DNA of 64,000 nt, taken from positions 124,001 to 188,000 of the forward strand of contig JAKMXF010000297.1 in NCBI GenBank assembly GCA_024704765.1, read 5' to 3'. How positions within the stretch are numbered: position 1 is the stretch's first letter; each line of letters begins with the position of its first letter. The notes beneath the pieces are model-generated. The model did no database searches and had not been told where the DNA came from. It was given only the letters and a program-made list of their open reading frames with translations. Below, one piece after another: positions 16,248-48,935 of the stretch. This DNA comes from Oopsacas minuta. Taxonomy: Eukaryota; Animalia; Porifera. A program made the position numbers and the translations under genes.

Positions 16248-16451
16248 ATTAATATTGTACCCTTCATTCATTCATTTATTATAATAAAATATTTATATTC
16301 TACATTTCTATTAGTGTAAATGAATCATCGGGTAGGCTATATAGCCTATATTTGCTGATATCATACTCTCTGTAAGAGTTTATACGTACTTTTCTCCAAA
16401 ACGATTCTTGCACTAATTGTAAAGGAAGAATATTCGAATAAGATTCCTACA

Positions 16452-16658: not shown

Positions 16659-17318
16659 TATAATATTTTGTAGACAGATAAAAAGCCTTTTCAACAATTT
16701 GAGGAATTGTTTTGACTAATCCAGATACCATTCGGATTATTCCATGTTATATTATTTTATTCTAAACACAAAATTCCTAGACTTTAGAACAAATCAGCCT
16801 ACCCTCACATGTTTCCCAATTTAATATTTAGATATTGAGGTATTTGTATAAAATGATATTTACTTGTAGTAACTATATGCAGCTGACCTTTACAGATGTG
16901 AATTTGCTAAATAATGTTTACATTCAAACAACAATAGTAAACATCCATAATTGAATTATCCTACTCGAAGGGCATAGTATAATACACATATTTGAATTAT
17001 ATAATCTCTTTCATAAAATGTGTAGTAATTAGTGGTTGGTGTAATTTTGTTTAATAATTGAAGTGATAAATGGTGGGTAGCTTAATTCTTTACACCTAAG
17101 TGCTTGTATAATCAATTACTATACGAACTGTTGTACCACTTTCAAAGTGTCCAATCTTTTTGATTTCGTCGAGAACCTCCTGATAAAACTAAAGCAAGTT
17201 AGGATCCTAGCAAGCCCTAATGATAAATTTAGATCGTACAAGGCCCGAAATACCCGATTTTGAGAGTCAAATCTTGAATATTTTTATACGATATATTTAG
17301 CAGTAATTACTACACCAG

Positions 17319-18848
17319 ATGAGCAGCAAACAGATCGCTCAGGTATTCGACCAATACCAAAAAGCACGTACTAATTTCGTACATACAGTAGCAGACTTAG
17401 CCTCCAGGCCCCAGAACATAGAGGTTCTACAAACAATGGGTGTAATGCAATTGCTACGACCCCTCCTACTTGATGTTGTCCCTACAGTACAACAGACTGC
17501 AGCTCTAGCATTAGGGAAGATAGCTAATCACAATGAAGAGCTTGCTAAGCTAGTTGTTGATGGTGAAATACTTCCACAGCTTGTGTACTCTTTAGCAGAA
17601 CAAAACAGATTCTATAAGAAGGCAGCTGCTTTCGTACTAAGAGCGGTAGCCAAACACTCTCCCGAGTTATCTCAGAAAGTTGTGGAGTGTGGAGCTCTAG
17701 ACGCCCTTGTTATCTGTCTCGAGGACTTTGACCCCGGCGTGAAGGAGGCAGCTGCCTGGGCACTGGGATACATAGCTGGTCACGATGCAGATCTAGCTCA
17801 GTCAGTTGTTGATAGTGGAGCTGTACCCCTGCTAGTTCTATGCATACAGGAGCCAGAGATATCTCTGAAAAGAATATCAGCTTCATCCCTCTCCGATATA
17901 GCTAAACACACCCAGGAGCTTGCTCAGACCGTAGCAGACTCTGGAGCTATTGGACATCTCACACATCTAATCTCTAACCCAGACGCTAGACTCAGAAGAC
18001 AGTTGTTTTCAGCTCTCTCACAAATAGCTAAACACTCCATAGAGTTAGCTGAGATGGTGGTAGAAGCTGAAGTATTCCCTATAGTACTAAACTATCTCAA
18101 AGATCCTGACGAGTATGTGAAGAAGAATACAGCAACACTTATACGCGAAATCGCTAAACACACACCAGAACTTGCTCAGCTGATTGTCAACACAGGTGGA
18201 GTTGCAGCTGTAGTAGACTTTATCGGTGAATCAGCTGGGAGCATCAGATTACCCGGTATCATGATGCTAGGTTACATAGCTGCACACTCAGAGACCCTAT
18301 CGATGGCAGTCATCATGTCTAAGGGTGTGGTTCAGCTAGGTTCTGTCCTTACAGGAGAAACAGAGGGTCATATATTAGGTGCTGCTGCCTGGGCAGTGGG
18401 ACAGATAGGTAGACATTCATCTGAGCATGCACGTCATATAGCTGTAGCCAACATATTCCCTGTACTACTCCAGCTGCACATATCTACTGATAGCTCAGAA
18501 GATTTGAAAAAGAAATGTAAGAAAGCACTCAAGAATGTTCTCAGTAAATGTGTGTATCTTCCCGCTCTAGAACCACTTCTAATCAACGCACCTCCAAGCA
18601 TACTCAAGCACGCTATAGGACAGTTCTCTAAAGTCCTACCGCATGATCCTAACGCCAGACGTCTATTTGTTACGTCAGGCGGGCTCAAGAAAGTTCAGGA
18701 GATAATAGCTGAGCCAGGTTCTCTCCTACAGGAGTATATAAATATAATCAACACCTGCTTCCCTGAGGAAATAGTCCGTTACTATTCACCTGGCTACTCA
18801 GAGACTCTACTAGACCGTGTGGAGAACTACCAGCCTGTGGTAAACTGA
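17319..18848 (+). CDS. SPAG6: Sperm-associated antigen 6 (PF16), axonemal central-pair armadillo protein
   Basis: QVFDQYQKARTNFVHTVADLASRPQNIE N-terminus, ARM repeats, C-terminal EEIVRYYSPGYSETLL; 509 aa as in orthologues. Confidence 0.97.
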   Translation: MSSKQIAQVFDQYQKARTNFVHTVADLASRPQNIEVLQTMGVMQLLRPLLLDVVPTVQQTAALALGKIANHNEELAKLVVDGEILPQLVYSLAEQNRFYKKAAAFVLRAVAKHSPELSQKVVECGALDALVICLEDFDPGVKEAAAWALGYIAGHDADLAQSVVDSGAVPLLVLCIQEPEISLKRISASSLSDIAKHTQELAQTVADSGAIGHLTHLISNPDARLRRQLFSALSQIAKHSIELAEMVVEAEVFPIVLNYLKDPDEYVKKNTATLIREIAKHTPELAQLIVNTGGVAAVVDFIGESAGSIRLPGIMMLGYIAAHSETLSMAVIMSKGVVQLGSVLTGETEGHILGAAAWAVGQIGRHSSEHARHIAVANIFPVLLQLHISTDSSEDLKKKCKKALKNVLSKCVYLPALEPLLINAPPSILKHAIGQFSKVLPHDPNARRLFVTSGGLKKVQEIIAEPGSLLQEYINIINTCFPEEIVRYYSPGYSETLLDRVENYQPVVN

Positions 18849-18888
18849 TCACTTATACCCCAGCTAATTAGTTAACTCACTCTCTGCT

Positions 18889-20535
18889 ATGTACTATTCT
18901 AGTATCTATTCTTCATTGTATTACTCTTACTCTATGATATCTACATTTCTAATATATCCTACTATTTATTTAAATAATGTATTTGTTATAATTATAATTA
19001 GCACAGATCTCTCAGGAAACCTGGAGTTATCTAGTGGATGTGGTAGGTACAGCTACTCAGTTGTACCTGTGTATCTACAGACTGCTAGACATAAGATTAC
19101 AGATCAGGAGCCGAATAGAAGAGGTGTAAATTTGATTTGTGAGAAGATAGACAGTACTTTAAATCTAACCTCTCCACCCCTTCCAGTTTCCTCTAACATT
19201 ATATTCACTTCCCCTTCTGTATTCAATACACCAAAGCATCCACAACTGCTTATTGATAAAATTGACTTTGAGTCTCCGCTAGCACCTCAATCACCTACAG
19301 ACAGAGATAAGAAATTGTCCTATAATTCTGATCGTATTAAATCTCCTATCAAGAGTATGAGACCTCCTGGAAAACTTACCAGAAATAAAAGAATTACAAA
19401 GGGTACACGACCTGCTAAGAAACAGCCTAAGGAGACTAAAAAAGGTGTAAAAATTAAACACAGGGACTTCGATATGGACTCCTCCCCTGGATCAGAATCT
19501 GATCTAGAATCCAAACTGAATTCTTATTTTGATTCTACCTCAAAGTGCTGTGTAACTTCTAGTAACACCCTAGCTGATATGTCCCGTCCTAAGCTGAGTC
19601 ATCAAGAGGTACATAATATACTCTCTTCAGCTCCATCACCTCCTCTCCAACTAATTAGGGACAATTTGTTCAACACTCATAAAATGAAGTTTCAATCATG
19701 GACTGAAATATTAGCACTAGGAATGAATATAATTGTATATGGATTTGGTTCTAAGCGAAATCTCCTCGAGACCTACCGTACAGACCATTTATCAAACTCC
19801 TACCATCTTGTAATCAATGGTTTCTTTCCAACTCTCTCAATCAAGAGTATTTTAACCCAGATCTCTTCTGACGTGATAGGATCAAATAAAACCTTTAAAT
19901 CAATACCAGATGAGTGTAGCTATATTATCAATGAATTCCATACAAGAGATGATCTAGCAGATCTGTACATAATTGTTCATAACATTTGCAGTACAGGACT
20001 ACAAATAGGTCAAGCTCAGATCACACTCAGTCAACTAGCTACGTGCAAACGCATTCACTTTCTAGCTTCTATTGACTTATTTAAAGGACCTCTTATGTGG
20101 GACCAGGGTATACTGTCTAGGTATAAATGGGTTTGGCAATATTGTCCAACATACGCCCCTTATACAGAAGAGATCTCTTACGAGAATTCATTCTTTGTTC
20201 AACAATCAGGTTCAGTTGCCCTCAGTGCTCTGGTACACGTCATGGCTAGCTTGACACCGAATGCTCGTAACATATTTAAACTACTCACACAGCAACAAAA
20301 TGATACAGGTCCTGGAAAGAAATACTCAGCTGCTGGTGTTCCTTTTTACGACCTGTATGCTATGTGTAGAGCTAATTTCTTAGTGAATAGTGAACAGACT
20401 TTAAGATCTCAGCTGACAGAGTTCAAAGATCACAAGCTGGTCAAGGGTAAGAGGGGAGGAGATGGAGTAGAATACCTTAGAGTAACAGTAGATCAGTCAA
20501 CAATAAAGTTATATTTTGAGGAGCATTTTGAGTAA
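18889..20535 (+). CDS. ORC2: Origin recognition complex subunit 2 (true start uncertain)
   Basis: NIIVYGFGSKRNLLE, VINGFFPTLSIK, IHFLASID, TYAPYTEE, LASLTPNARNIFKLL-like motif, QLTEFKDHKL winged helix. Confidence 0.9.
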   Translation: MYYSSIYSSLYYSYSMISTFLIYPTIYLNNVFVIIIISTDLSGNLELSSGCGRYSYSVVPVYLQTARHKITDQEPNRRGVNLICEKIDSTLNLTSPPLPVSSNIIFTSPSVFNTPKHPQLLIDKIDFESPLAPQSPTDRDKKLSYNSDRIKSPIKSMRPPGKLTRNKRITKGTRPAKKQPKETKKGVKIKHRDFDMDSSPGSESDLESKLNSYFDSTSKCCVTSSNTLADMSRPKLSHQEVHNILSSAPSPPLQLIRDNLFNTHKMKFQSWTEILALGMNIIVYGFGSKRNLLETYRTDHLSNSYHLVINGFFPTLSIKSILTQISSDVIGSNKTFKSIPDECSYIINEFHTRDDLADLYIIVHNICSTGLQIGQAQITLSQLATCKRIHFLASIDLFKGPLMWDQGILSRYKWVWQYCPTYAPYTEEISYENSFFVQQSGSVALSALVHVMASLTPNARNIFKLLTQQQNDTGPGKKYSAAGVPFYDLYAMCRANFLVNSEQTLRSQLTEFKDHKLVKGKRGGDGVEYLRVTVDQSTIKLYFEEHFE

Positions 20536-20714
20536 TAGAAAAGGTTTTTGTATTAAATTTGATAATTCATTTGCAAATTCTTGTTTGAAATTCTATCATT
20601 TACATCTTTAAATGGTGTTTGTACGTAGAGACGAAAGATATTGAAGATGTAGGAGAGTATGTTAATGGTTAATTTCCTTAATCGCTAGCTTGCTCTATGC
20701 TCCAATCAACCTAA

Positions 20715-22422
20715 ATGGCGTCAAATAATTTAGATGAATATAACTTAGCGTGGTTATCAGGATGTGTAGAAGAATGGCTGTTAAAGTCAGGAAGACATCA
20801 TGGATTCACTATGAAGGAGAAGAAAGATAATCGTGTGTATCTATGTTGTCCAAATGCATCTGGGGAAGTCTACATTGAACTAGGAGAGCAGGGGCTCTCT
20901 CTTTGGACTGAAAATCCAGCTCTACAGACTATAATTCAAAACAGTAGAGTATTGGATATGCTGGAGGATTCTGCATCTAAAATTTCTGATCCTGTGCCTG
21001 CACTAGAAGCATTAGCTTCTGGTCTTCTTAGTGAACCCAAGAGCGAGCAGAGTACTGATATGGACGAACTTAGTGACGAAGACAATCAACCAGGTCCTTA
21101 CATTTGTTGATAGATAACTGTATATACTGTATCTGCTAATGCAAGATTTCCAAATCAGCTTTTGTAATACAGCTCCTATAGGGAGATGCCCTAATGACAT
21201 GGACATTGTGAGACGTCCGTATGTCTGTCCGTCCGCCCGTCCTGAGAAGAACAAAAATAGATAACCCTGAGCTGCACTACCAGTCTGTCTGCTGGACATT
21301 TTTTCTATCCAATTGCAATTTTGGACTACAATGCATAAGCATATTATCTCCTAATTAGTTAATATGATATTTGGCAAAATATACAACATACTAATACTTA
21401 ATTCGTGCCATATCGCTTATTAGACTGGTAAATCATATGAATAAATCATGCAATTACTGCAACTAACTCAAAGCAATAAACACCATGTTACTAGGCTATA
21501 ACAGCAAATTTATTAACCATAATCATCACATGAGATATCAAACAGAGTTGTAACATTAGTTCAGACTAGTTTAAAATTTTACTGTCTATGGTATGGTAAA
21601 TTGTGTAGTTGATTGGTGTAAATTTAATAGTTTCAATTCCTTTGTTGATTGTTAATTTTCCTGCTAGATGATTACGTTTCAGATGAGGATGTGGACGACT
21701 ACTATGGGCCAGAAGACCTAATTGACGAGGCACCAGGGGAAGTTGTCAAGGAGAAAGAGAAGGAGCCTGATGATGGACTGAGTGCTGATAAGTTCTTCAC
21801 TGGAGATGGAACTCCTATGGCTGTTCAACGATTGCTACATGATTTGAGGAATTTGAATAAAATCGGTACTAAGTAAGTCCAGTAAGGAATGGAATGTAAT
21901 ACACGTTTTATCAAAGAAATTCGTTTTACAATTTTGAATTTGTCAATTAATAAATTCAATAATAAATTTGTTATTTTAATCAGATATGGCTTTCTTGGAG
22001 CTCCAAGAGGAGATAACTTGTTCTTGTGGGATGTAAAATTGATGGATTTTGAAAAGGGAACCAAACTAGCTAAAGATATTCATAAATGGGCCAAAACTAC
22101 AAAACATGATGAATGCATTTACATGGAGATGAAGTTTCCAAAAGATTACCCAATGGCTCCACCCTTCGTGCGAGTTCTCAGACCAAAATTTATGTTCCTA
22201 ACTGGACACATCACAATAGGAGGCAGTGTATGCATGCAGGTGTTGACACGCAGTGGGTGGCAACCAACAAACGACATTGAATCTGTCCTTGTACAGATTC
22301 GAGCCCAAATATGTGCAGATCCTAATGCTAGTCTTAATGTAGCGGACAAAACTGATTACTCCGAATCAGAAGCTAGAAGTGCCTTTGAGAGAATGTGTGC
22401 TAGGTATGGCTGGAAAAATTGA
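20715..22422 (+). CDS. UBE2Q: Ubiquitin-conjugating enzyme E2 Q family; exons 20715-21093, 21668-21872, 21984-22422
   Basis: GT-AG introns 21094-21667 (phase 1) and 21873-21983 (phase 2) join three track ORFs in frame; UBC core FPKDYPMAPPFVRVLRP and GGSVCMQVLTRSGW with catalytic Cys. Confidence 0.88.
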
Positions 22423-22922
22423 TTGATTTTAATCTAGCTGTGGTTTTGAGTTTTGTTATGGCCTAATAAATCAAAGCTTGTAGATATGTTAATATACTCC
22501 TTTGATATTTATAATTAATTAAATAATTATTCGAGAATACAAAATTGAGACTACAAAATTGTTACTTAACTAGCTTGTTAATTTCTATACATGTGCTGTT
22601 ATATTTAATTACCTTTGATTAAAAGTTCAAATAACTACCAAAAGTGTTGGTTAACAGCATGAACTTACATTTATGGAATTCCATAAAACAAAATAGTTTG
22701 CAGTTTCTTTTCAATTGGATCTGATGCAAATTAGATAGTTCCGGTGGCTACTATTATTTTCTTTTCAAATGTTACATATTGCCTCTACGTTGTAATGATT
22801 AAAACATGATTATAAGCCAACTAGATTGTATGTTAAACATTATACAACCAAATTAATTACCTTGTAATGATGCTAGTAATTCACATATGCGAGTTGACCA
22901 TTTAATCTCTAATACGTATTAA

Positions 22923-23051
22923 CCGAATATGTTTTAAGCTCGTAATGAAAAGGAACACTAAAATTTTACCAATTGCCGCACCAAAAACGAGATTTTAGAA
23001 CCTTTTTGATGTCATAAAAATAAAATTACTTATTTTCCTGGCCGTATTTGG
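22923..23051. mobile_element. piggyBac-like MITE, copy 1
   Basis: TTAA on both sides, CC...GG termini (ccgaata / tatttgg); internal sequence shared with the copy at 30310. Confidence 0.7.
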
Positions 23052-23540
23052 TTAAGGTATTTCCTTTGGGTACTCTTATCTTTCCCCCTTGGAGCATGGA
23101 ATATCAACTTAATGATGGTGTCGGACGTCCATTTACGGTTATTAATTAACCCTAGTGCACGTATGGTTACAAGCGTAACGTCAGCGATTCGATTCATTTG
23201 CAGCCATGAACTCTTTAACTATTCAAAGTTAATATTTTCTACCAAATAAATTAATAAATACCACGAGTTTTATACAATTATTTTCGCAAAATAGAAAATC
23301 ATCGGGGCTTATACAAGGGTGTAATCTCGAAAATTGCTTATAGTAATGGAGAGAATGACTTTTGCAGTGCTCTCCAACCCAATATATCTAGTTGTATTTC
23401 AATATATCCCCCTCTAGGAAAAGCACTAAAATTGCTCAGCCCCCGGTAAACACTGAGTCCTCGATGATATTAAATCTATGAGAGAAAACCTCTTATACAT
23501 GTAATTAATATGAATTGTTCTAACTTCTCGATACATACAA

Positions 23541-24926
23541 TTAGTTGTATTGTGGTTTTTCCACTGGAGTCTTGTGCGCTAGATACAAACATCCCATACT
23601 GATGAGTGCACTAATCAGGAAAATCAAATCGAACCACTTATGATAAATATCAAATTGTAGATCTCCGAATACGCTAGTAATAGATTTCCTGTATTTTAAA
23701 GGTAGGTTCATCCTCATAAGCAATATTGTAGAAACGAAATACATTCCCATTATCTCAGCCAAGAACAGAACTATTAGATTACTCGACCGAGTGCTAGACA
23801 CATTGGAGAATAGTTTGGAAAATGTTAACAGTAAACCTCTTATAGATGTTATAACGATAACACCTACCATCAAAAATGAAATGAACTGATTCCAGAATGT
23901 GACGTCTACATTTATCTTCAAATATATCACCATTATTTCCAAGGTTCTAGAGATTGGATCCTTTTTACCTACACGTTGCAATAAAATATTTATTGTAGTC
24001 ATGATTAGCTTGTAACAGCAGTAAGCAGAGAATATGTAACCAACTGCATTGAAGTATTTTCCTTTTAGTGTTTTAGAAAATTCCATTCGTTCCCTAATTG
24101 AATGTAATTCAACTGTTTCTAGGAATAGTTGTCTAGCTAATTCTTCTAGTGATTTTATCTCTGTGGTCAGCTGTCTCGAATCCTGTGAACCCCATCCGCC
24201 AGAAAAATACCCCATTAATCGTCCAAACACCTGCCCTGTCCCTGACCTATTAGCAATTGGTTGGTATGATTCATTATCTAGTAAGACAAGTTTCTTCTTC
24301 TTTACCAAAATGTGTTTCTCCGTTTCAAGTAGTTTGTTTTCCATAGCCTCAATACTCTTCTCATCAATCGGCTTTATAAAATAAGACATGTATGTGTAAG
24401 GAGCATTTACTGCTCCAAAACCGGACAGAGCTCCGATCAAGGTTACGCCCAAAATTCCGATCCTACTAATGCACTGCTCAAGTGATAATAGAAAACCGTC
24501 TCCACTCAAATTAGTGAATGGTTGATCTAGCTTCCAGAATATATACATGAATGTTAGCCATCCTATGACAGATATTATGCGTTGATGTTTTGGCTTGGAT
24601 ATGAAGGGAATCATAGTGGCAAGAAGATAGGCGAAATACATTGGAAGAATGACAATAAGGACAATCGTTATGCCAGTCAAACTCACAGTCCAATAAACTT
24701 CTTTTGAAAGATAGTGAACATAACTGAGTATATCCAATATTATTAGCTCAAACAGTGTACAGGAAAGTGAGAAAGTTATTGAGAATAATGCTTGAACGAT
24801 TCCATTGTGTACTTCATAATTTGCAAAAAGCTGCTTCATAAAAAATACCCATCCAATTGCAAAAAATACCACTTGTGAAGCAAAAATGCACAAACAGTCA
24901 GTTACCAGCTGACCGATATCATCCAT
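23541..24926 (-). CDS. GPR89: Golgi pH regulator (GPHR)
   Basis: FSITFSLSCTLFELIILDI, SRIGILGVTLIGALSGFGAVNAPYTYMSYF, KDPISRTLE, YHKWFDLIFLISAL; ATG at 24926 (track start is TTG). Confidence 0.95.
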   Translation of the reverse strand: MDDIGQLVTDCLCIFASQVVFFAIGWVFFMKQLFANYEVHNGIVQALFSITFSLSCTLFELIILDILSYVHYLSKEVYWTVSLTGITIVLIVILPMYFAYLLATMIPFISKPKHQRIISVIGWLTFMYIFWKLDQPFTNLSGDGFLLSLEQCISRIGILGVTLIGALSGFGAVNAPYTYMSYFIKPIDEKSIEAMENKLLETEKHILVKKKKLVLLDNESYQPIANRSGTGQVFGRLMGYFSGGWGSQDSRQLTTEIKSLEELARQLFLETVELHSIRERMEFSKTLKGKYFNAVGYIFSAYCCYKLIMTTINILLQRVGKKDPISRTLEIMVIYLKINVDVTFWNQFISFLMVGVIVITSIRGLLLTFSKLFSNVSSTRSSNLIVLFLAEIMGMYFVSTILLMRMNLPLKYRKSITSVFGDLQFDIYHKWFDLIFLISALISMGCLYLAHKTPVEKPQYN

Positions 24927-26116
24927 TGAATCCAATGTGTTGTGTTTGTAATGAATTGATGGATTGTGACTATAAAATGGATATAGATTGTGGTTCTACT
25001 ATATAAGCAGGCATATAATTTTGTGTAAACCTGCCAGCTTAAATTCACAACCAAATACTATGGAATGTCAATAGCAAATTTATTAGAAAGATGTCCCACA
25101 TAAAGGGTGCATTTCTCCGCCAACGTCGTGATTTATTATTATTATATTTCAAAAGCTATCTTCAAATATTGAACATGTTGTGTTGCAATGTGACTCTGTA
25201 TTAGGAGAATCAATGGAAGATAGTATTTTACCGACAGCGAAATTGGTCTCTAGCAAAAGATGACCACAAAAATTCCTGTGAGCTCAACAAAATAGTGCTA
25301 AGATATTTTGTTGTTTGTAAGAGATCGTTAATGGCTATACTCAAAATACTTTATCATCGTCATATCCATATATTCAGATGGTGTACTAAAGTGCTACTTC
25401 TTGTGTGATTTAATTAATTCATGAAACGTAGCACTACATGTTACATTAAAAACTAATAAGGAAGATATGTAGCTATGAATATGTCCCCATAACGCTTGAC
25501 GTGTTTGTTAGTGTTGAAAACAGCAGAATATGTGCATGCACGTTGACTTGACTTTTGTGTGCATGCACAATTGTACATTGCACACCTGACTAGTTAATTT
25601 ATACAAACTCAGATTCATAAACCATTGCATTATGGTAGGATTGAAGTATACTGGGTCATCTCCCAGCCTTCATCTGCACCTGATTTTGTAATAATGTTAT
25701 GACTTTGTTATCAACTTATCATCCATCATCTGCATCTGTGGAATTTATATTTCAGTACTCGTATTCATTCGCATTCATACCATGCATAAGTAGAAAGTTT
25801 CCCAATTATTAAACTACTTACTAATCATTGCTATGGACTAGCCTAGGCGGCTAGGCTAGGCTCAATGCTTACAGACTCTACTTTCAATACCTTCAGTAAC
25901 TCGCCACCCTCTAGTATCTCGGATTATTCAGTGATCCCAGAGATTGTTAGTTTTTATATTTTGACAAAATGATTTGTTAAATAGCGTTATCAAGGGTTGT
26001 AACAGCTACAAGCGTTTCTTTATAATCCAGCACCTGTGATTTTATAAATTTATACATAGATACGCAATTTATATGAATGATTTTATTTATGATAGCTGAT
26101 TACACTAATTGATTCA

Positions 26117-28915
26117 ATGACCACCAAACCTCAGACTGCTAATCTATTCGGCAATGAATGGGCACGTGATATCAACATGTTTCTTGCCAATCCTACCAGT
26201 TTCATAAGTAAGTCTAGCAAAACTACAGATCTCCTCATCGACGACATGCTGATGATAATATCGACTAGCTCAACTATTCTATCACTTAAACTTGCTATAT
26301 TGCATGTATTCCTAAATGTTGAGCTTTTTCAGACTAGCAAGAGCTATTTAACAAAGATTGTTACGGCACTAGAATACTTGTCTTCCCAGTTTGTAGAACA
26401 AAAAGACAATCTTTTCCTCCACCAGCTACTGGCTGCACTGACTACCTTATCAATTGAGTTAGATGAACGTTTTTTACATGACTCAATTCAACTTACAAAA
26501 TGTGTGGATCTGCTCCTGATACAGGCTAACCAGGTAGCAGACGGTACTCGTAGTGAGCGAGTACTCGTCAGATCAGCAGCATGTATCTGTCTGTCTGAAT
26601 TAGAAGAGGTGTATCCTGGTATTTTGTACTCTAAACTCAGTTATCTATTCCAGTACTGTCAGCTGGAGAAGACATTCATAAGACAGTATTATTTATCTCT
26701 ATTCTGTACTGTATTACGTCACTCTCTTCTCAAGTTTAAATCTATTGAGTTTGAGGAACAAGCGAATAGCTTACAATTCTTTTTTAGTCCAACTACGGTA
26801 CTCATCCCTTTTATACCCCCTAAGAATTTTCGCGAGGAGAGTGCGCACTTACTCTGTTCCTCAGTAGATTGTGTCATGAGCCCTAACCTTGAGAAGGTGG
26901 ATCTCAAGAAGTCATTCTCCACCCTCCTAGACGCCTCTACGAATATGACCCACACCATGCTAGCTAACACCATGCATAAACTCTCCGATTGCGTTCTCCT
27001 AGCAGGTACACACCCCTCTATCCTGAAGATACTATACCATCGCTACATACACTCATCCAGTATTGTACTCCTCCAGCTGGTGTACTCGCTTAAAGCCAAG
27101 TTCGGACGAGAGCTTTTCGATATTGCAGAAGAGTCTAGTTTCGAGAGGAGTATCTTCTGGGCGCTGAATAATCCGCACAACCTCAACCCACACACCCTCT
27201 TACTCTACACCTGGCTTATACACTTTCCTATTCTAGACCCTATTACTCACCGTGAGGATAATAGAGTACCGAATGGTCTCCCGCTTTTTCAACTCTGCTA
27301 CCCTACTCCTTTCGACTCCATTGACTTGACGGTACGCTGTTTCCATCTCTTTTCTGCTTCAGAGCTTATCCTTGAGGAGCCTCGCTCAATTAACACTCAT
27401 CTCTCAGTATTAGTACAGAGAGTCAAGTCACAACCTGGATCATACGCGACTGCTGCATTCTTTCACACTCTCTATCTATTCTTACACCGTTCACACCCTG
27501 CTTTAATGATTCAATCTATACGTGTTATCCTCACAGATCTATATCTATCCTATCCTATGCTAGCTCCTTATCTGATCAATTTCATGTTGGTGATAACCTC
27601 AATAGTTCCAGCTAATAATTTTGCTATACCAATGCTCAGCTATATAGTCAAACACCTGCAAACACTGAGACAGGTACGAACAGCTGATCTCATGTTCCAT
27701 CTACAGCTCGTAGAGTATGCAGCCCTAACCCCCAAATTCAATTTAGACAGTCTCTTGGTTCTACTGCACTCCGTTTTACAACCTGAAGTCCTGGAGGAGG
27801 GAGATTGGCATTTAGGTCACACAATTTTAGATGTGTGTAGAGCGTTGTTACTAGGAATCCATTCAGATTCTCAATTCCAGAGAGCTTGTGCACTACTATA
27901 CCGAATCCGGGCTAAATATACTGATGTTGATGTGTGTAATGAAGCTGGGTTTCTATTGATATTAATTACATCTGTTTCAACCAAAAAATATCGACCTCTC
28001 CTGTCCAAAGCGAGTGAGACTAACGCAGAGCCGTCTCTTAAAGATCTGGTGGTAGGCACCACATTCCAACTGACTGCTCCTATCACTCACATCCCAGAAG
28101 TAATTCTACAACTCGAGAAGATGCCAAACAAGACATCCTCCTCTTCGACTGCTTATAGCAATCCTCCAACTGTGACTAGAGATCCTACAGAAATACTCAA
28201 ACAGTATTTAACTGCTACAGATCAATTGATAGATACCAGTTTCCAATTGAATTTTAACCTAAGTTACGCCCCTCATGCAAAACCTAGTACTTCAATGCAG
28301 ACTATTTATGCTATCTCTCTTCATTTGAGTGATAATCCTCACTACCATCCTACAGCTAGTATTACTATACCAAAGCTTGTATACAAAGCCCCATCTGAAA
28401 ATGATAAGAGGAATGTTTCATTTGAATTCAGACCAAAACTTCCATTTCCAGCACAATTTTCTGTTTCTGCCATATTCTCTCTCCAGGACGGAGCAACCTA
28501 CCAAACCCCGCTCGCTCATCTTGAGGTCTCATTCTCAGACTTAGTACTCCCTATCCCTCTCCCTCAGGAAATTAGTGAACAAGATACCCCCGCCCTCTTT
28601 GAGGCTCTCTGGTCCCATCTCTCTAGAAAATGTTTCTCCGAGAAGAATACGGAGTCTAAATGTACTGAGAGTTTCATCAAGCTCAACAAACCTTCTGAAA
28701 GTGTTACACGTATTCTCTTACACACATTGTCTCCTAACATAGTGACGTCATCTGATAATTTAATACAGCTGTTATTGTATATCCCGCCCAGACACCATAT
28801 CCTAATGAAGGCTCGTGTTTCCCCAGACAGCACTGACGTGAGTATCCTCACAGATGAATGGAGACTGCTCTCCTATTTCAATCAGTATATGCACACTCTC
28901 CTCGCTCAGATGTAA
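26117..28915 (+). CDS. AP5B1: AP-5 complex subunit beta-1
   Basis: Helical solenoid with RSAACICLSELEEVYPGIL (AP5B1 RAxACECLRELE motif), C-terminal FEALW and LLYIPPRHHILM; size about 930 aa. Confidence 0.78.
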   Translation: MTTKPQTANLFGNEWARDINMFLANPTSFISKSSKTTDLLIDDMLMIISTSSTILSLKLAILHVFLNVELFQTSKSYLTKIVTALEYLSSQFVEQKDNLFLHQLLAALTTLSIELDERFLHDSIQLTKCVDLLLIQANQVADGTRSERVLVRSAACICLSELEEVYPGILYSKLSYLFQYCQLEKTFIRQYYLSLFCTVLRHSLLKFKSIEFEEQANSLQFFFSPTTVLIPFIPPKNFREESAHLLCSSVDCVMSPNLEKVDLKKSFSTLLDASTNMTHTMLANTMHKLSDCVLLAGTHPSILKILYHRYIHSSSIVLLQLVYSLKAKFGRELFDIAEESSFERSIFWALNNPHNLNPHTLLLYTWLIHFPILDPITHREDNRVPNGLPLFQLCYPTPFDSIDLTVRCFHLFSASELILEEPRSINTHLSVLVQRVKSQPGSYATAAFFHTLYLFLHRSHPALMIQSIRVILTDLYLSYPMLAPYLINFMLVITSIVPANNFAIPMLSYIVKHLQTLRQVRTADLMFHLQLVEYAALTPKFNLDSLLVLLHSVLQPEVLEEGDWHLGHTILDVCRALLLGIHSDSQFQRACALLYRIRAKYTDVDVCNEAGFLLILITSVSTKKYRPLLSKASETNAEPSLKDLVVGTTFQLTAPITHIPEVILQLEKMPNKTSSSSTAYSNPPTVTRDPTEILKQYLTATDQLIDTSFQLNFNLSYAPHAKPSTSMQTIYAISLHLSDNPHYHPTASITIPKLVYKAPSENDKRNVSFEFRPKLPFPAQFSVSAIFSLQDGATYQTPLAHLEVSFSDLVLPIPLPQEISEQDTPALFEALWSHLSRKCFSEKNTESKCTESFIKLNKPSESVTRILLHTLSPNIVTSSDNLIQLLLYIPPRHHILMKARVSPDSTDVSILTDEWRLLSYFNQYMHTLLAQM

Positions 28916-29046
28916 TAGTTCTGCTAGTGTTAATGCTGTTTATTTTATATTATTCGAATGAGATGAATATATCCGTTAGTTAGCATATTCTCAATACTTA
29001 ACTTATTTAGTTAACATTTCTTGTAGAACTCACTATTAGAGTTAGA

Positions 29047-29688
29047 ATGGAATGGGAAACTCTATCACTCACTTGTGTAGAGCATCAGAAAGATGATCTA
29101 TTTGCAAAGTTAATGGCTCTATTCTCTCTCTCTCCTCTTGTCATTTCTATATCATTAGCTACATTTATGTTTTGTAAGCGTGATACTTACTCAATAATAT
29201 TCTCTATCGGATTAGTATTGAACTTCGTCATGGTGCAAGTTGAGAAGATCATTATAAAAGAACCACGTCCCCCTGGTGGTCCTGGAGAGCGTTCCCTCTT
29301 TCAATACGGTATGCCTTCTATGCATTGTCAGTTCGTTTCATTTTTTGCTCTTTTTCTTACTCTAAGTATCATCCTGCGTTGGAAAATGAGCCTCTCATCC
29401 AAATCCTTCTATTTATTTGCCATAAACGTTATACTGTTCGGTACATGTGTGAGTAGAGTATATTTATTGTACCATACAGTTAGACAAGTTATTGTGGGTG
29501 TGGTTGTTGGTGCTTGTTTAGGAGTGACATGGTATTACCTTACTAAATGGGTGAGCTATTATGTAAATAGATTTATTTTATCATCAACAATTGCTGAGTA
29601 TTTCTGTATTCGAAATCTTGGGCATTTAGAGGATGCTACACAGTTTGAATATGATATTGCAATGAGAAGTCTTATGAAAAACCAATAA
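29047..29688 (+). CDS. DOLPP1: Dolichyldiphosphatase 1 (PAP2 family)
   Basis: WETLSLTCVEH...DLFAKLMALFSLSP N-terminus, KIIIKEPRP, YGMPSMHCQF, SRVYLLYHTVRQV. Confidence 0.9.
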   Translation: MEWETLSLTCVEHQKDDLFAKLMALFSLSPLVISISLATFMFCKRDTYSIIFSIGLVLNFVMVQVEKIIIKEPRPPGGPGERSLFQYGMPSMHCQFVSFFALFLTLSIILRWKMSLSSKSFYLFAINVILFGTCVSRVYLLYHTVRQVIVGVVVGACLGVTWYYLTKWVSYYVNRFILSSTIAEYFCIRNLGHLEDATQFEYDIAMRSLMKNQ

Positions 29689-30309
29689 TGACATTTATTT
29701 GTATATTGTTTATTTCAAGTTTATAGAAATTATCAAGGTTTTCTTACGAGTCACCTAAATAAACCATTTTCAATCCGTTGTCCCAGTTATTATTGTTTTA
29801 TTAAATTGGTTCCCTCGAACTTTTATGTATATTACATTATTTATTGTAAGTCTGTAACGCCAAGGTGTTGTTTATGAAAATACACTGAGTGGCTGAATTA
29901 CCCCATTGTAATGTCTACTTAGTATGGCTAGAAAACAATAAATCGGTTGCTTTCTTAGAAATGTGTAGTCTTTCAACGCTGTGTATATGCTGAGATCAGT
30001 TGATTGTTATCCATGTGGTCTACGAGTTCATTTTAGAATAGGTATATGAATGCACTTCCTCGAATATGCTGATATATATCACAATTGAGCTGTATTGTGT
30101 TTTCAGGTTATACGAACCTTCTCAATGTGATAGAACAATTAAACTTGGTTATGACGACTTGATATTATTTTTCCTAATCCTTATTATACTCCCATTTCAT
30201 TATCAAGAGAAGATTCGGTGAAAAATAGTAAATCAATTCTCCACCCTCAAATTTGAACAATTGAATGTCCCATATTTCTAATCTGTTTGAACATAGCCAA
30301 GTTAATTAA

Positions 30310-43244: not shown

Positions 43245-43471
43245 TAACTGTTGTAGAAATTATTAATGCATGACTACATACATGTTGTAAATAATGGAAT
43301 CTATTTATGATAAATTATAGTAATTCTAGGGGGCGGATCCAGGAGGCTGAAACCCCCTATTTACATACGTTTATGAAGGAGGATAAATTATGAGTAAATA
43401 TATATAAATTCCTAGACAAAGACAATAAATAATCAGAGGTAACCAAACTTACAAAACTTTCCTCATACAGC

Positions 43472-44509
43472 ATGGAGCAAATGATTTCAAAGATAAAAAC
43501 ACTTTCCTTGGATTTCTCAACTCCTCAAAAATCTCTCTCTAAAGCTGGAATAAACTTAGAGCAAGATAGCGAATCATTAGAATTGATAAAAAATTATTTC
43601 AACTCATGCTCACTCCCAAAGCTGAAGTCTTTAGATATCTCATCAGTAGAGAAAGCTGAGAATAGTGGAATACACGTAGCACAAGATCTGAATGGATTCT
43701 ATAAGACATTAACTACGTTACATATCAAAGACTCGAAGGATTTAAGACTTAATGTTGTCAATGTGTATAAATTCACTATCCTCACACAGTTATCGATTAC
43801 GAACTGTAATATTACTATACTACCAGCTGGTGTTGGTAAACTTGTAAATCTTAAAATACTTAATCTCTCTGGTAACAAGCTATTTGATCTGCCTTATTTC
43901 ATTGTATATTGTGAGAACCTTGAGGAGCTAGATCTCTCCCACAATGCATTTGAATACCTCCCAGGGTATATTCTCCGAATACCAAAACTTAAAAGACTAC
44001 GTCGGTTATATAATCCGCTTGAAGATGTAAAGAAGAACTCTCCTCTCTCCAGTGTATGTATTCTGAATATCGATTACACAAAAATTCAGGAAACAAGCTT
44101 TATCCCTCCTCTCCAAACCCTATGTCTCCCTAAGATAATAAGGTCATATCCCAACTATTGGGAATTATCTATAGCACCTACTCTATGTAGGATATTAGAT
44201 CAACATGCTGATAATATTGTTTATTGTGAAAACTGTTTTAAACCAGGGATTAAGTCAGAAGTCTATATCCTGATCGCGGTTATATTTAGATGTTTTGAAC
44301 TCAGTCTAGTTCCTTTTGGACACTACAGCTGTTCTACTGATTGTAACAACATATTAAAGATTAGAATTCAAGAAAAATCTGATTCAATTCGAAGCCAATG
44401 GGAACAGGAATATGATGCAATGGTCCAACGTCACAATCCTCCTCGATCCGTACCAGAAGCCCCATCATCTCAAAATAGGGGTAGAGGACGTATTTGTAAC
44501 ATATTATAA
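43472..44509 (+). CDS. Leucine-rich repeat protein, LRRC58/LRRC28-like
   Basis: LRRs (LKILNLSGNKLFDLP, LEELDLSHNAFEYLP), BC-box-like PPLQTLC, Cys-rich tail CENC...PFGHYSCSTDC (cf. LRRC58 PLMHYLCSPEC). Confidence 0.62.
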   Translation: MEQMISKIKTLSLDFSTPQKSLSKAGINLEQDSESLELIKNYFNSCSLPKLKSLDISSVEKAENSGIHVAQDLNGFYKTLTTLHIKDSKDLRLNVVNVYKFTILTQLSITNCNITILPAGVGKLVNLKILNLSGNKLFDLPYFIVYCENLEELDLSHNAFEYLPGYILRIPKLKRLRRLYNPLEDVKKNSPLSSVCILNIDYTKIQETSFIPPLQTLCLPKIIRSYPNYWELSIAPTLCRILDQHADNIVYCENCFKPGIKSEVYILIAVIFRCFELSLVPFGHYSCSTDCNNILKIRIQEKSDSIRSQWEQEYDAMVQRHNPPRSVPEAPSSQNRGRGRICNIL

Positions 44510-44659
44510 ATGTATTGGTCTGTAATATATTATCTACATACAGTATACGTATATTATTCTTATGTAGTTTTATAATTATGATTATTATACAGATTTACAA
44601 GAAATACGACATAATCCAAAGTATACAAATAATATAATAAAATGAGCTAAAAAATCCAT

Positions 44660-47263
44660 TCAATCAAATTCTCTTTTGATAAAATGTTTATAAATAACAT
44701 CCCGTTTGAGCTTGTAACTTGTAGTAATCTCACCTGTCTTTACAGAGAATCCTCCTCTAGCAAATGCCCAGGTCTTAATGTGATGGTTTTTAGAAATCGC
44801 TTCTTTATTCATCTCCTTCATCTCCCTAGTGATAAATTCACGTACTTGAATATGACTCATGAATGCACCTACATCCAATATAGAGTTAATCCCGAGGTGG
44901 TAGAGACAGGAGTGAGCAGCGAATGCATCTAGTTCCTTAGTCCTATCTCCTTCATCATTGTATTTAACTTTAACAGTGAATAATGCTATCAGTTCTCCTG
45001 TGTCATTTGGTAGAACAATAACATACTCCATAAATGGTAATCTCTCCAGTAGCTTATCCTCCAGTGTAATAGGAAATACTCTCTCTCCGTCCTTCATGCG
45101 GAAATGGTGAATTTTACGTCCGTGATATGTGAGCTTATCGCCTTCTAGCTTACCCAGATCTCCTGTTTTATAGTATGGTATCTCCATGGTATCGATATTT
45201 ACGAAAGCGTCTTGAGTCAGCTTTTCCTCATCGACATACCCCATAAACAAATTCCTACCTGAGATACAAATCTCTCCAATATGCTCATCACCCGGCTCCA
45301 TGAGAATATGATAATCAATCTCACTCATTATTTGTCCATCTGTCAACTTTACATCCTCCGGAGTAGTAGAAGCTACTGTAGCAGTTGCTTCAGTCATTCC
45401 GTATGTATTCAGTACAAATATATTTCTCTTAACTAAGAACTCAAACACTTCTCTAGGTAGAGGAGCGTATGTACTGCAACATATCTTACATTCGTTAAGA
45501 CCAAGTACTCCAGCTATTTTCTCTAAGAATGCAAACCGTACGAAAGAGAAGAATAACTTATGTTTGAGATTCTTGTTTGCATGAGTGACCTCCTTCTCTG
45601 TGATGTTCTCTGCCCATGAATATAATTTCTGCTTCAGGTAGCCAGACATCTCAACCTCAAGAGACAAGCGTTGGTAGATACCCCTCCAGAATTGCTCCCC
45701 TGCAATGATGAAGGTGGGACGGACCTCTTTGAGACACTCTACGAGTCCATAGTCCATCCAGGGTGTGGTACCGATTATATAGACTGTACCTTTCATCATT
45801 AAGTTGAAATATATATCAGACATATGAGCTAAGGTAGTTGACAGAGGGAAATAGTTGAGTATTATACTCCTCTTACTACCTAAATAATTCCGAAGATTGA
45901 AGAACTTCATACTATCAGTCATGTGTCGTGTGATATTATCATGGGAGAGCATAACTCCTTTAGGTGTACCTGTAGTTCCACTGCTGAATAGAATTGTACA
46001 ACATTTGTTTGGCTTTAATCCTCGCATAATTCTTGTAATGTTATCGTTATTCTCTCCACATCCTCTGCTGTTGAACGTGGCCCAGTCTACGCCCCTACTG
46101 TCACCAGGAGAAACATGGGGTGGGAATAGGATCACATGTTCTACCATTACGTCATCAAGAATAGTAAGTACTTTAGAAAAATAATACGCATCTCCTACGA
46201 ATAAGAATTGTAGTTTTGTCATTAAAGCAATCTGCTTAAGTCTAATCTCTGTGGTATTTGGACTGATCGCTACAGATACTCCCCCGGCCATTATAATACC
46301 GAGATTACTGATTATCCAGTAAGGAGAGTTACCTCCGTACAGACCCACACCTCTACCTGATACCAAGCCACATCGTCTCAGAGCCTTAGCTACCTGCAGA
46401 GCAGCATCAAATAACTCCAGATATGTGATCCCCTCCCATTCACCTCTCTCCTTATACTTTATAATGAAATTACCAGGACAAGTAGTAACATATGAGAGTA
46501 GTAATCTAGGGATAGTTAGAGGTACATTTGGATCTACATTGTTCTCTCTCATGTACCTCCTGATCCTCACTTCTCCATTCATGTCAGAAGTATAGTAAGG
46601 AAGATTCTTGTTATAATAGCACTCTTTCATAAGCACATCATCTGCTATGTCTATTTTGAGTAATTTCTCAAGTGGAGATAGCTTCCTAATCACATCATTA
46701 TCTCTCTTTACTCCTTTACCAAGCTTTATTGAGTATTTACTTGGAGAGAATGTAATTCTAGAAATTAAGCTATCTACATGTATAGGATTCTCTGAGTAAT
46801 AATCAATGAGACCATGGATAGTAGTAAACGTATCACCAGTAGATTCTAACTTTACAGAAGGTGTCTGTCTAGGGAAAGAGAGTACTCCCTCTAGTACGTA
46901 TGATTTTTTCAGATGCTTTGGATTATATAGTATGCAGATAGATACACGGTTAATCTCACACTTGTCCATATAGAGGAGGTATGAGCCATTAGGTCTGTTA
47001 TATTTAGTTAGGATCTCCTCAGCTGTATCATTACGTATTATGCCATGAAAGGTAGGCTCCTCGTACAAGGTGGGTATGAGTGGGGAGGAGAGCGCCTCAT
47101 CCTCCAAAGAGCTCACTCTGTATCTGTAAAGTTCGGTGGAGATTGTAGGAGGTCTCTTTGAGTCTGTACTCTCCTGTAAATGAGATGAACACATCTGCAT
47201 TGAATCAGAATTAACATTTTCCACTGATGCAATGTATATCTGGTCATTATCTTGAGTAGCCAT
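44660..47263 (-). CDS. Fusion of a degenerate SH2 domain and a bubblegum-type long-chain acyl-CoA synthetase (ACSBG-like)
   Basis: SH2-like FHGIIRNDTAEEIL...NGSYLL...FTTIHGLIDYYSENP (aa 71-161); ACSBG motifs PNKCCTILFSSGTTGTPKGVMLSHDNIT, YGMTE, TGDLG, GEITTSYKLKR; single uninterrupted ORF. Confidence 0.85.
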   Translation of the reverse strand: MATQDNDQIYIASVENVNSDSMQMCSSHLQESTDSKRPPTISTELYRYRVSSLEDEALSSPLIPTLYEEPTFHGIIRNDTAEEILTKYNRPNGSYLLYMDKCEINRVSICILYNPKHLKKSYVLEGVLSFPRQTPSVKLESTGDTFTTIHGLIDYYSENPIHVDSLISRITFSPSKYSIKLGKGVKRDNDVIRKLSPLEKLLKIDIADDVLMKECYYNKNLPYYTSDMNGEVRIRRYMRENNVDPNVPLTIPRLLLSYVTTCPGNFIIKYKERGEWEGITYLELFDAALQVAKALRRCGLVSGRGVGLYGGNSPYWIISNLGIIMAGGVSVAISPNTTEIRLKQIALMTKLQFLFVGDAYYFSKVLTILDDVMVEHVILFPPHVSPGDSRGVDWATFNSRGCGENNDNITRIMRGLKPNKCCTILFSSGTTGTPKGVMLSHDNITRHMTDSMKFFNLRNYLGSKRSIILNYFPLSTTLAHMSDIYFNLMMKGTVYIIGTTPWMDYGLVECLKEVRPTFIIAGEQFWRGIYQRLSLEVEMSGYLKQKLYSWAENITEKEVTHANKNLKHKLFFSFVRFAFLEKIAGVLGLNECKICCSTYAPLPREVFEFLVKRNIFVLNTYGMTEATATVASTTPEDVKLTDGQIMSEIDYHILMEPGDEHIGEICISGRNLFMGYVDEEKLTQDAFVNIDTMEIPYYKTGDLGKLEGDKLTYHGRKIHHFRMKDGERVFPITLEDKLLERLPFMEYVIVLPNDTGELIALFTVKVKYNDEGDRTKELDAFAAHSCLYHLGINSILDVGAFMSHIQVREFITREMKEMNKEAISKNHHIKTWAFARGGFSVKTGEITTSYKLKRDVIYKHFIKREFD

Positions 47264-47423
47264 TCTATAGAGTGAAATTATAACTATATTATCTAACTTA
47301 ATAGTTAATACGTAGTTTGTCTATAATATAATTTATACGTAGTTAAATATAGCGAAATGGTGTACAGAGTTGATACCATATTATTACGTGATATAAATAG
47401 TGATAATTAAGTAGTATCAGTTA

Positions 47424-48935
47424 TCAAGTACTCCTCATTTTATGCAGATGAGTAGAATCCATCAAGATAGGATCTTTAGACATCATGACACGAGCTCTCA
47501 TAGGGCGTTGTTCTCTCAACATTCGATTGGTGGTAGATGGGAGGATCAGCTGGTCCTCTCCAAGCGAGTGTACCTGTGTACTCTTAGTGTATCCATTGCG
47601 AGGAGGGAATTGGGGAGCAGTAGCTACGCGGTGTACCGGGGGCGTGTCTGTCTTACCAAAGAACTGACCCTTATAATGAGTATCAAATTGGTCTCTTTCT
47701 AGATTAGGATGATCGGCTATTTCCTTATTATTCACAAAGCCAGAAGCTTCTTTGAGTCCTACTTGACTGTCCCAATCCTTAGCAGGATGTGAATCGGTAT
47801 CAGGCACATGTTGAGGGAACGAATCCTTCATTACACTCATCTTATTGGTTGTGTATTTAAGATTCATAAACTCAGCTGGGTTTGATTGCTGAATACGCGG
47901 GATCAGCTGTTGAGGTACCTGTTTGAGAGAAGTGTAAGCTTCTGATTGCTCTGCTTTACGCAGAAGGAACTCTGGTAGGTCTCTATGTCCTTTGGTGAAT
48001 CCATTAGATATCTCAGCTGAGTGACACAGTCTGATCCCGTAATGGGGAGGAGCTACATTTTTCACGTGAGCAGAACTAACATGGAAATCATCCTTCATGG
48101 CACTTCTACTAGTAGGGCGGGTAGTAGTAGTCCCTCGTTCATTTCCTATCAGAGCTTCATGTCTCCTGAAAGTGATCGGTTCGATCTGTTTGCTGTGAGT
48201 AAATCCAGTTTCTTCCTTGCCTCCTAGCATCAAACGCCTAGGTCCCTCATAAGAAAACCTGTTGCTCTTCTGAGTGTATGCAGCTTTCTGTTCTGTTGAG
48301 AAAGCAAAAGGTCCCAAACCTGAGTTCTCCTCCTCTACACGGGTCTTGACAAACCTCCCTTGAGGCTCAGCCTGGTGTGGTAACTTTACTCCCAAAACCT
48401 GTCCTGGACCCTGCTCCCGCGTATCTACATGCACAGACTGTACATTGTTATGAAACGGCCTCGTGCTAGGAATATCCTTGGTGTAACCCATGTCAGTTTG
48501 GTATGTAGTTGTTGGTAGTTGGAGGAAGGCAGGACAATCCCCATGAGCGGGTCTAGGCTGTCCGCTCAGAGCTGGGGGCTGGGATTGAATGAAATTGGCC
48601 TTGTTGGTAGCAAGATCAAAGTCTTGTCTGTATACGGTAGAATCTTTGTTCTTCCTCAGATTCTCTCCCAGAGACGGATTATCTACTGCATCCATTCCGT
48701 AGTTGTAACCAATAGAGGGACGGAAGTTACTCCCGTAACCAGTGGAGTTACCTCTCCATTCAACACGAGGATGGAACTCAGGCTGGCCGAAGTAATGATC
48801 ATAAGCAGTGGAGTAGAAGTCATAAGCTGTCCGTCGTGCTGTACCTCTACTACACAGGATCTCGTGATAGGGTGTTCCGATCTGTCTCTTCCCTGGCTCT
48901 TTCATTTCTGTCGGGCGAACAGCAACTCGTGACAT
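47424..48935 (-). CDS. SAXO4: Stabilizer of axonemal microtubules 4 (PPP1R32/IIIG9)
   Basis: DFYSTAYDHYFGQPEFHPRV...TGYGSNFRP...DAVDNP, VHVDTREQGP and KEETGFT match PPP1R32/SAXO4; TxYxxDF (Mn-like) motifs. Confidence 0.85.
   Translation of the reverse strand: MSRVAVRPTEMKEPGKRQIGTPYHEILCSRGTARRTAYDFYSTAYDHYFGQPEFHPRVEWRGNSTGYGSNFRPSIGYNYGMDAVDNPSLGENLRKNKDSTVYRQDFDLATNKANFIQSQPPALSGQPRPAHGDCPAFLQLPTTTYQTDMGYTKDIPSTRPFHNNVQSVHVDTREQGPGQVLGVKLPHQAEPQGRFVKTRVEEENSGLGPFAFSTEQKAAYTQKSNRFSYEGPRRLMLGGKEETGFTHSKQIEPITFRRHEALIGNERGTTTTRPTSRSAMKDDFHVSSAHVKNVAPPHYGIRLCHSAEISNGFTKGHRDLPEFLLRKAEQSEAYTSLKQVPQQLIPRIQQSNPAEFMNLKYTTNKMSVMKDSFPQHVPDTDSHPAKDWDSQVGLKEASGFVNNKEIADHPNLERDQFDTHYKGQFFGKTDTPPVHRVATAPQFPPRNGYTKSTQVHSLGEDQLILPSTTNRMLREQRPMRARVMMSKDPILMDSTHLHKMRST

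Follow-up and report, generated by a model that had tools for sequence, protein, structure and literature searches.

Introduction

SH2 domains usually stand beside kinases, phosphatases, adaptors, phosphoinositide enzymes, or transcription factors. In PLC-gamma, SHIP1/2, and the PI3K p85 adaptor, a canonical phosphotyrosine (pTyr)-binding SH2 domain serves as a targeting module on an enzyme that acts on lipids, with phosphoinositides as the substrates. A second group, comprising the FERM-SH2 regions of JAK/TYK2 and the SH2 domains of SH2D5 and RIN2, lacks the arginine at position betaB5 and binds independently of pTyr; in these proteins, the SH2 fold with its key arginine substituted presumably forms a constitutive docking surface, and its partners are a kinase, a PTB domain, or a Ras-binding domain. 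Here, we describe a gene, termed SH2-ACS, in which a divergent N-terminal domain, very probably homologous to SH2, is joined to an acyl-CoA synthetase (ACS) of the ACSBG ('bubblegum', lipidosin) type. The gene lies in a 64,000-nucleotide stretch of the genome of the sponge Oopsacas minuta (GenBank assembly GCA_024704765.1, contig JAKMXF010000297.1, positions 124,001 to 188,000 of the forward strand), which is referred to as the window and to which all positions below refer.

The SH2-ACS protein follows the same general logic as PLC-gamma, SHIP1/2, and p85, but its SH2 domain is arginine-less and its enzyme activates fatty acids. With JAK/TYK2, SH2D5, and RIN2 it shares the substitution of the key arginine, but it differs in having a tyrosine as the substitute and a metabolic enzyme as the partner. 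Considered as a whole, the locus is probably best explained as a glass-sponge fusion of an SH2 domain, a linker, and an ACSBG-type synthetase, in which the SH2 domain would act in docking.

Results and discussion

Conservation and reality of the fusion

The open reading frame (ORF) at 44660-47263 on the minus strand, 867 amino acids long and with ends exactly as given by an earlier, sequence-only reading of the window, consists of four parts: a leader (residues 1-51), the SH2 domain (approximately residues 66-165), a linker (166-199), and the ACSBG-type synthetase (200-867). A search of 5.8 billion proteins, with the relatives taken from ENA assemblies, returned seven full-length orthologues, each encoded by a single ORF of 852-881 amino acids, with 99-100% query coverage and an identity to the window protein of 56-69% by BLASTP (57-69% in the multiple alignment). 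The next-best matches were ACSBG1/2 enzymes, which showed 25-29% identity and covered only the C-terminal ~74% of the protein. All eight family sequences aligned from end to end, residues 52-215 included, and the junction between the SH2 domain and the synthetase was present in eight independent assemblies, five of which also had a matching gene neighborhood.

The orthologous loci fetched for the comparison of gene order (n = 5; L001-L005) all carried PPP1R32 directly upstream of the orthologue and an HLH gene further upstream. Downstream, an opposite-strand leucine-rich repeat (LRR) gene and a Ras/Arf-like gene were found in four of the five (LRR in L002-L005), with Far-17a after the Ras/Arf-like gene in three of those four and a dynein-MT/CFAP97-type gene next in three. 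The neighborhood in the window was the same. One of the orthologues, P0004, can be assigned to the glass sponge Vazella pourtalesii, where it is transcribed, as its sequence and the ORF of a Trinity transcript from that species (P0125) fall into one 90% cluster and are 100% identical over residues 323-863.

These observations bear on whether the fusion could be an artefact, produced either by chimeric assembly or by counting untranslated 5' sequence as the N-terminal part of the ORF. Nothing was found in favor of such an artefact, except that the sole independent transcript ORF, that of Vazella, begins at residue 323 and therefore provides no independent complementary DNA proof of the junction. 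Set against this are the single ORF in eight assemblies and the shared neighborhood in five of them, in-frame purifying selection on the N-terminal part, flat RNA-like read coverage, and contigs that cross the junction and carry a leader joined at the first ATG. We consequently rejected the artefact as hardly credible, and the chimeric junction that the sequence-only reading had named as its own possible undoing was not what we found. In terms of architecture, reality, and conservation, we are highly confident that SH2-ACS is a genuine, transcribed gene specific to the glass sponge lineage (Hexactinellida).

The same combination did not appear in any wider search. None of the 113 listed synthetase relatives from outside the family had a precomputed SH2 annotation, and no set combining SH2 with AMP-binding occurred among the 100 Atlas clusters nearest to the whole protein. 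Among 1.84 billion representative sequences, the N-terminal domain was attached to a synthetase in one 50%-identity cluster and in none outside it, and a profile search of the same representatives returned no further SH2-ACS relatives. Full-text literature searches for an architecture combining SH2 with acyl-CoA synthetase or AMP-binding yielded nothing relevant, and the paper on the Oopsacas genome makes no mention of SH2 or acyl-CoA. SH2-ACS is a new domain architecture made from two known domains and so far confined to glass sponges.

Identity of the N-terminal domain

The sequence-only reading had recognized an SH2-like domain at 46781-47053, equivalent to residues 71-161, which agrees with the span mapped here (P70-I161). 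Residues 50-200 of the eight orthologues were combined into a profile (A2), which gave 27 matches at E<1 when compared with the PDB, and all 27 were SH2 domains, among them FRK, SHIP1/2, SHP2, Src, and RasGAP. The best sequence matches, the C-terminal SH2 domain of SYK (E = 2e-4) and SAP/SH2D1A (E = 1.4e-3, across the whole domain), both retain the canonical arginine, in contrast to the window protein, and were reached at E-values of only this order. In the 1.84 billion representatives, A2 found four proteins, one of which was the family's own representative. Two of the others are SH2 proteins, namely, P0121, which has three SH2-like repeats (E = 7e-6), and P0122, from Littorina, which has four SH2 domains of canonical type (E = 3e-5); the whole-library E-values of both are sums of several weak domain matches. 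The fourth, P0123, was rejected as an SH2 protein because its 308 amino acids form repeats of ~52 residues (CILYP.RLNTN..AADGVYSLPKKT) and matched only via a short 'CILY...' segment.

The Pfam SH2 family (PF00017) was matched over the full profile by all eight isolated N-terminal domains, with a best E of 6.7e-5, and the signature motifs of the SH2 helices alphaA and alphaB (HG.I.R..AE..L and F..I..LI.YY) were kept. In the full-length AlphaFold2 (AF2) model, the secondary structure ran alphaA 78-87, betaB 94-100, betaC 107-113, betaD 122-128, and alphaB 149-158, so that the SH2 topology of alphaA, a central betaB-betaD sheet, and alphaB appeared in the predicted model, at a predicted local distance difference test score (pLDDT) of 50-70. 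When the AF2 model of the N-terminal domain was submitted to Foldseek, all 50 PDB matches shown and all 30 Swiss-Prot matches belonged to proteins that contain SH2, with the alignments to Swiss-Prot entries falling on the SH2 domains at a probability of 0.99-1.00. The template modeling (TM) scores by query were 0.37-0.45, as compared with 0.49-0.54 for the ESM Atlas model. That model and the protein-language-model features pointed exclusively to SH2 families, and the SH2 regions of JAK were among the Atlas structural neighbors of the window protein.

Several results weigh against this assignment, since low-confidence models and weak-to-moderate sequence scores carry it. The N-terminal domain of the window protein scored 15.9 bits (E = 0.014; profile positions 2-77 of 77), below the Pfam SH2 cut-off of 21, and a Pfam scan of the whole protein did not list PF00017 at E<=1, the N-terminus showing only a weak match to DUF7063 at residues 70-157. 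The AF2 model built from the eight orthologues alone had a pLDDT of 50.8, and the SH2 region stayed at only ~50-70 in both AF2 models, the full-length run being no better. The subthreshold Pfam score, the low pLDDT, and the summed E-values of P0121 and P0122 would suit a lineage-specific domain of another fold whose likeness to SH2 is convergent or due to chance. Such a domain would not be expected to give SH2 exclusively in the PDB profile search, the language-model features, and both the ESM and AF2 models, to match the Pfam family in eight of eight members across nearly every profile position, or to keep both helix motifs, and we regard this alternative as very improbable. The N-terminal domain is, with high probability, an SH2 homologue. 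The sequence-only reading is borne out on this point by profiles and fold search, albeit with low-confidence models. As for two of the checks it had proposed, the Pfam comparison placed AMP-binding above the cut-off and SH2 below it for the window protein, yet all eight members matched, and the structure prediction gave an SH2-like fold by Foldseek at a low pLDDT.

P0121 (L006:3001-4422; 473 amino acids), the closest outside relative of the N-terminal profile, also has a weak F-box-like match, and its second repeat likewise has a tyrosine at betaB5 (YLFYID). Its gene lies on a densely packed Logan contig of 28 kb, beside two tyrosine-kinase-like genes and a row of pyruvate-dehydrogenase-like E1/E2 genes.

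Remodeling of the binding pocket

In the window protein, the segment equivalent to FLVRES is YLLYMD; when the protein is aligned with SAP and SYK, its Tyr98 falls at betaB5, opposite R32 of SAP. The loss of this arginine, noted already in the sequence-only reading, extends to the whole family, as Tyr98 is invariant in all eight orthologues. The serine at betaB7 is replaced by Asp or Asn. With respect to alphaA2, the suggestion that its arginine had also been lost applies to the window protein, which has N78, but six of the seven orthologues have Lys at this position, and seven of eight sequences keep the adjoining R77. Given a tyrosine at betaB5, Asp/Asn at betaB7, and alphaA2 without arginine, canonical pTyr binding by this domain appears very unlikely. 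The phosphate-binding BC loop, for its part, has K101, N105, and R106 invariant in eight of eight. Residue-level mapping of the pocket in three dimensions was precluded by the poor AF2 models.

The basic residues that persist raise the alternative that the domain still recognizes a phospho-ligand (pTyr or pSer/pThr) by means of a non-canonical pocket, in the manner of the 'FLVR-unique' SH2 domains, so that kinase signaling would recruit fatty-acid activation. The invariant K101, N105, and R106, the near-invariant R77, and the alphaA2 lysine of most orthologues would fit this, and the A2 matches include the SH2 domain of p120RasGAP (6pxb), which we take to bind pTyr without direct use of the FLVR arginine; Spt6 SH2 families were among the Atlas feature matches. 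Against it stand the betaB5 tyrosine in every member, the Asp/Asn at betaB7, and the Asn at alphaA2 in the window protein, and we know of no SH2 domain that binds pTyr while having an aromatic residue at betaB5. Phospho-ligand recognition of this kind is accordingly unlikely.

A ligand within the protein itself had been suggested by the string LYEEP, which the sequence-only reading assigned to an acidic leader and likened to the pYEEI site of Src-family kinases. The string is present, and the leader is mildly acidic (D/E = 10 versus K/R = 4, with S/T = 17, in residues 1-65) and predicted to be disordered, with a pLDDT of 30-37 in the full-length AF2 model. The proposed ligand site found no backing in conservation and was rejected: LYEEP (residues 66-70) becomes LYSEP, LYAEP, LYTES, LYAES, or LHLEP in the orthologues, with Y67 being His in one, E68 varying, and P70 being Ser in three. 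The SH2 profile match starts at an HG motif ~5 residues after the string. As it immediately precedes the first strand of the domain and is not conserved, LYEEP is most likely the N-terminal edge of the SH2 domain rather than a pYEEI-type ligand, and its likeness to pYEEI is probably due to chance.

The synthetase half

Pfam AMP-binding (PF00501) was detected at residues 270-676 with 187.5 bits, far above the cut-off of 29.9 (E = 4.4e-55). The best named matches were all ACSBG1/2 (25-29% identity, E down to 2.5e-71), and the Atlas structure matched a model of ACSBG2 over residues 218-867 with a TM of 0.85. The AF2 model was confident from residue ~200 onward, with a pLDDT mostly of 75-98. The likeness to ACSBG1/ACSBG2 includes the A3, A5, A7, and A10 motifs and an ACSBG-type N-terminal motif (W[ST]T..G.V.LR type), recognizable here as YYTSDMNGEVRIRR. 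When 36 family and ACSBG sequences were aligned, the core motifs SGTTGTPKG, YGMTE, and TGD, the A8 arginine R716, and the A10 lysine K851 were all present and invariant or nearly so (R716 in 36 of 36; Lys851 at least 90% conserved), in line with the P-loop, YGMTE, TGD, and terminal lysine picked out by the sequence-only reading.

The differences from ACSBG1/ACSBG2, apart from the added N-terminal SH2 domain, concern A4, A8, and the C-terminal family. The histidine of the A4 motif 'PLSH' gives way to Thr, Val, or Asn, and a new histidine appears three residues on (PLS[T/V/N]..AH), at what we take to be the fatty-acid gate position of the Thermus long-chain acyl-CoA synthetase structure. The A8 motif is GRKIHHFRMKDGER in the window protein versus GRIKELIITAGGEN in ACSBG, the family form being GRKIHHxRMxDGER. 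The canonical A4 histidine and the A8 'GRxKE/D' are thus absent, and the remodeled forms are invariant or conserved within the SH2-ACS family. Pfam AMP-binding_C_3, which is common to nearly all relatives, was not detected at E<=1. Because the catalytic residues are retained, the enzyme half has most likely remained able to form acyl-CoA from long or very-long-chain fatty acids, and the changes at the A4/gate and A8 suggest an altered substrate choice or altered kinetics. From these motifs, we infer an active but specialized synthetase rather than a pseudoenzyme.

Selection on the parts of the protein

The ratio of nonsynonymous to synonymous substitution rates (dN/dS; Nei-Gojobori) was calculated for two unsaturated pairs of orthologues and is listed with the mean pairwise identity in Table 1. 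The SH2 part is under purifying selection.

Table 1. Identity within the SH2-ACS family and dN/dS by region
Region (residues)	Mean pairwise identity	dN/dS, P0001 vs P0003	dN/dS, P0004 vs P0005
Leader (1-51)	39%	0.78	0.48
SH2 (52-170)	72%	0.20	0.29
Linker (171-215)	64%	0.09	0.19
Enzyme N-domain (216-705)	69%	0.12	0.18
Enzyme C-domain (706-867)	74%	0.10	0.13

A relative with ~96% identity, from run X5 (organism B), gave a less uniform picture. Its 35 listed differences, which span codons 28-313 (window 46325-47181), comprised 26 non-synonymous and 9 synonymous changes, an unexpectedly high and near-neutral proportion, which we count against the proposed reading of the gene. However, none of the 13 amino-acid changes in residues 52-215 fell on the 66 positions that are invariant there, an outcome with a probability of ~0.0012 by chance. 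The DNA divergence of this relative was alike in coding and spacer regions.

The linker combined a pLDDT of <50 (residues 162-196) with the low dN/dS of the 171-215 block, and its invariant residues include K180, L181, G184, V185, I192, R193, P197, and L198. A linker constrained like the enzyme could be taken to mean that the SH2 domain and the linker act intramolecularly and regulate their own synthetase in the manner of a lid or clamp that, for example, restrains rotation of the C-terminal domain; the remodeled A8 hinge-region motif, family-specific and invariant, could then reflect co-adaptation. However, AF2 gave no confident packing between the SH2 domain and the enzyme, and the leader has no conserved Tyr-containing ligand motif. 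Autoregulation of this kind seems quite improbable.

Transcription and probable leader splicing

Four public sequencing runs contained this stretch. Runs X1 and X3 had a flat depth of ~100 over genes and spacers, with Nextera adaptor tails, and behave like DNA; a contig of X1 (record 2, 44359-47883) covered the whole ORF with zero differences. In run X4, the depth fell from 500-790 over the ORF to 136 in the spacer at 47240-47436 and reached 10,000-30,000 over the PPP1R32 gene. We infer from the depth profile and adaptors of X4 that this run represents RNA, a circumstance that weakens the case for transcription in this species. No joints were seen in X4 across the ORF, which indicates that the SH2-ACS gene has no introns. 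The X4 depth did not increase past the SH2 region, which speaks against a major isoform without SH2.

An X4 contig stopped at 47266 with 11 non-genomic letters, its coding-strand tail being ...AAAAAACTTAC. The genome at this joint reads ...ctatAG|aATG on the minus strand, so that a single base separates the first ATG from the AG to which a foreign leader is joined. An AG within 3 bases of the ATG was found in five of six orthologous loci. With the leader joined at this point, translation is expected to begin at the annotated ATG. A start at a downstream methionine behind an internal acceptor, which the sequence-only reading had also considered, is contradicted by the flat X4 coverage of the ORF and by the position of the leader.

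A similar foreign-leader join was seen in the convergent LRR gene, at AG 43414-43415 (plus strand), upstream of its start codon at 43472. The tail there (...AACTTTCATAAAACTAAACTAC) and that of the SH2-ACS gene are alike but not identical, which suggests that the two are spliced-leader variants; the longer one, on the LRR transcript, is not encoded within the window.

Features of the locus and neighboring genes

The features of the locus are given in Table 2. The ends of the SH2-ACS and LRR genes are 150 bases apart (44510-44659), and an X4 contig (43850-45733) crosses the 3' ends of both with even depth; their 3' untranslated regions may overlap. The X4 depth of the PPP1R32 gene was 20-60 times that of the SH2-ACS gene, though only 160 bases lie between them and their adjacency is kept in five other assemblies. 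If these two genes form an operon-like pair, their products are far from equally abundant.

Table 2. Features of the SH2-ACS locus in the window
Feature	Position	Strand	Basis or remark
SH2-ACS fusion gene	44660..47263	-	Uninterrupted intronless ORF, 867 amino acids + stop, from the ORF list
Ser/Thr-rich acidic leader, residues 1-51, variable	47111..47263	-	Identity, dN/dS, predicted disorder
Pre-SH2 segment (52-65, conserved) and divergent SH2 (~66-165)	46769..47110	-	Profile, Pfam, Foldseek, dN/dS
Tyr98 codon, betaB5 (FLVRES Arg) position	46970..46972	-	SAP and SYK SH2 alignments
Conserved linker, residues 166-199	46667..46768	-	Low-confidence structure, strong constraint
ACSBG-type acyl-CoA synthetase body, residues 200-867, divergent	44663..46666	-	Pfam, best named matches, structure
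A3 P-loop SGTTGTPKGV	45953..45982	-	Motif mapping
A5 motif YGMTE	45389..45403	-	Motif mapping
A7 TGD (45158-45166) and family-specific A8 motif	45089..45166	-	Motif mapping
A10 catalytic Lys851	44711..44713	-	Motif reads TSYKLKR
AG splice acceptor, probable spliced-leader trans-splice site	47265..47266	-	X4 contig, one base 5' of ATG
PPP1R32-family gene, upstream neighbor, intronless, outside the fusion	47424..48935	-	Same strand; Pfam PPP1R32, E 1.5e-53
LRR protein gene, convergent downstream neighbor, intronless	43472..44509	+	Pfam LRR families

Proposed function and significance

We propose, tentatively and from the comparisons above, that the SH2 domain is a pTyr-independent docking module, a role for which the chances seem to us slightly short of even. 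In this proposal, the domain would anchor the ACSBG-type enzyme, which would otherwise be soluble, to a membrane site or a partner protein independently of phosphorylation, much as the arginine-less or phospho-independent SH2 domains of JAK-family kinases do; acyl-CoA would consequently be produced at a particular place, and the conserved linker would transmit the docking interaction or contribute to it. The roles suggested by the sequence-only reading, namely, pTyr-independent localization, lipid binding, or autoregulation of acyl-CoA synthesis, are reasonable candidates. Two points weigh against docking of this type: AF2 places the SH2 domain on the enzyme without confidence, and K101, N105, and R106, together with the alphaA Lys/Arg, leave room for a non-canonical anionic ligand. 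A variant built on these same residues, in which the arginine-less SH2 domain with a remodeled anion pocket (Tyr98, K101, N105, and R106) would read a phosphoprotein or a phosphoinositide headgroup, appears rather improbable. If it were true, signals within syncytial glass sponge tissue would bring very-long-chain fatty-acid activation straight to a membrane site, and SH2-type signaling modules would be physically and directly linked to lipid anabolism, a link for which we found no description.

The weight of the finding is limited by its narrow taxonomic range and by the predicted nature of its function. SH2-ACS places an SH2 domain on a core lipid-metabolic enzyme, which was not described in the literature searched. 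It also provides a clean natural case in which selection has maintained an SH2 fold whose pTyr-binding arginine was lost, and it may inform the other uses of this fold. Glass sponges are rich in unusual very-long-chain fatty acids, and the fusion points to a specialized, possibly localized, fatty-acid activation step in these animals.

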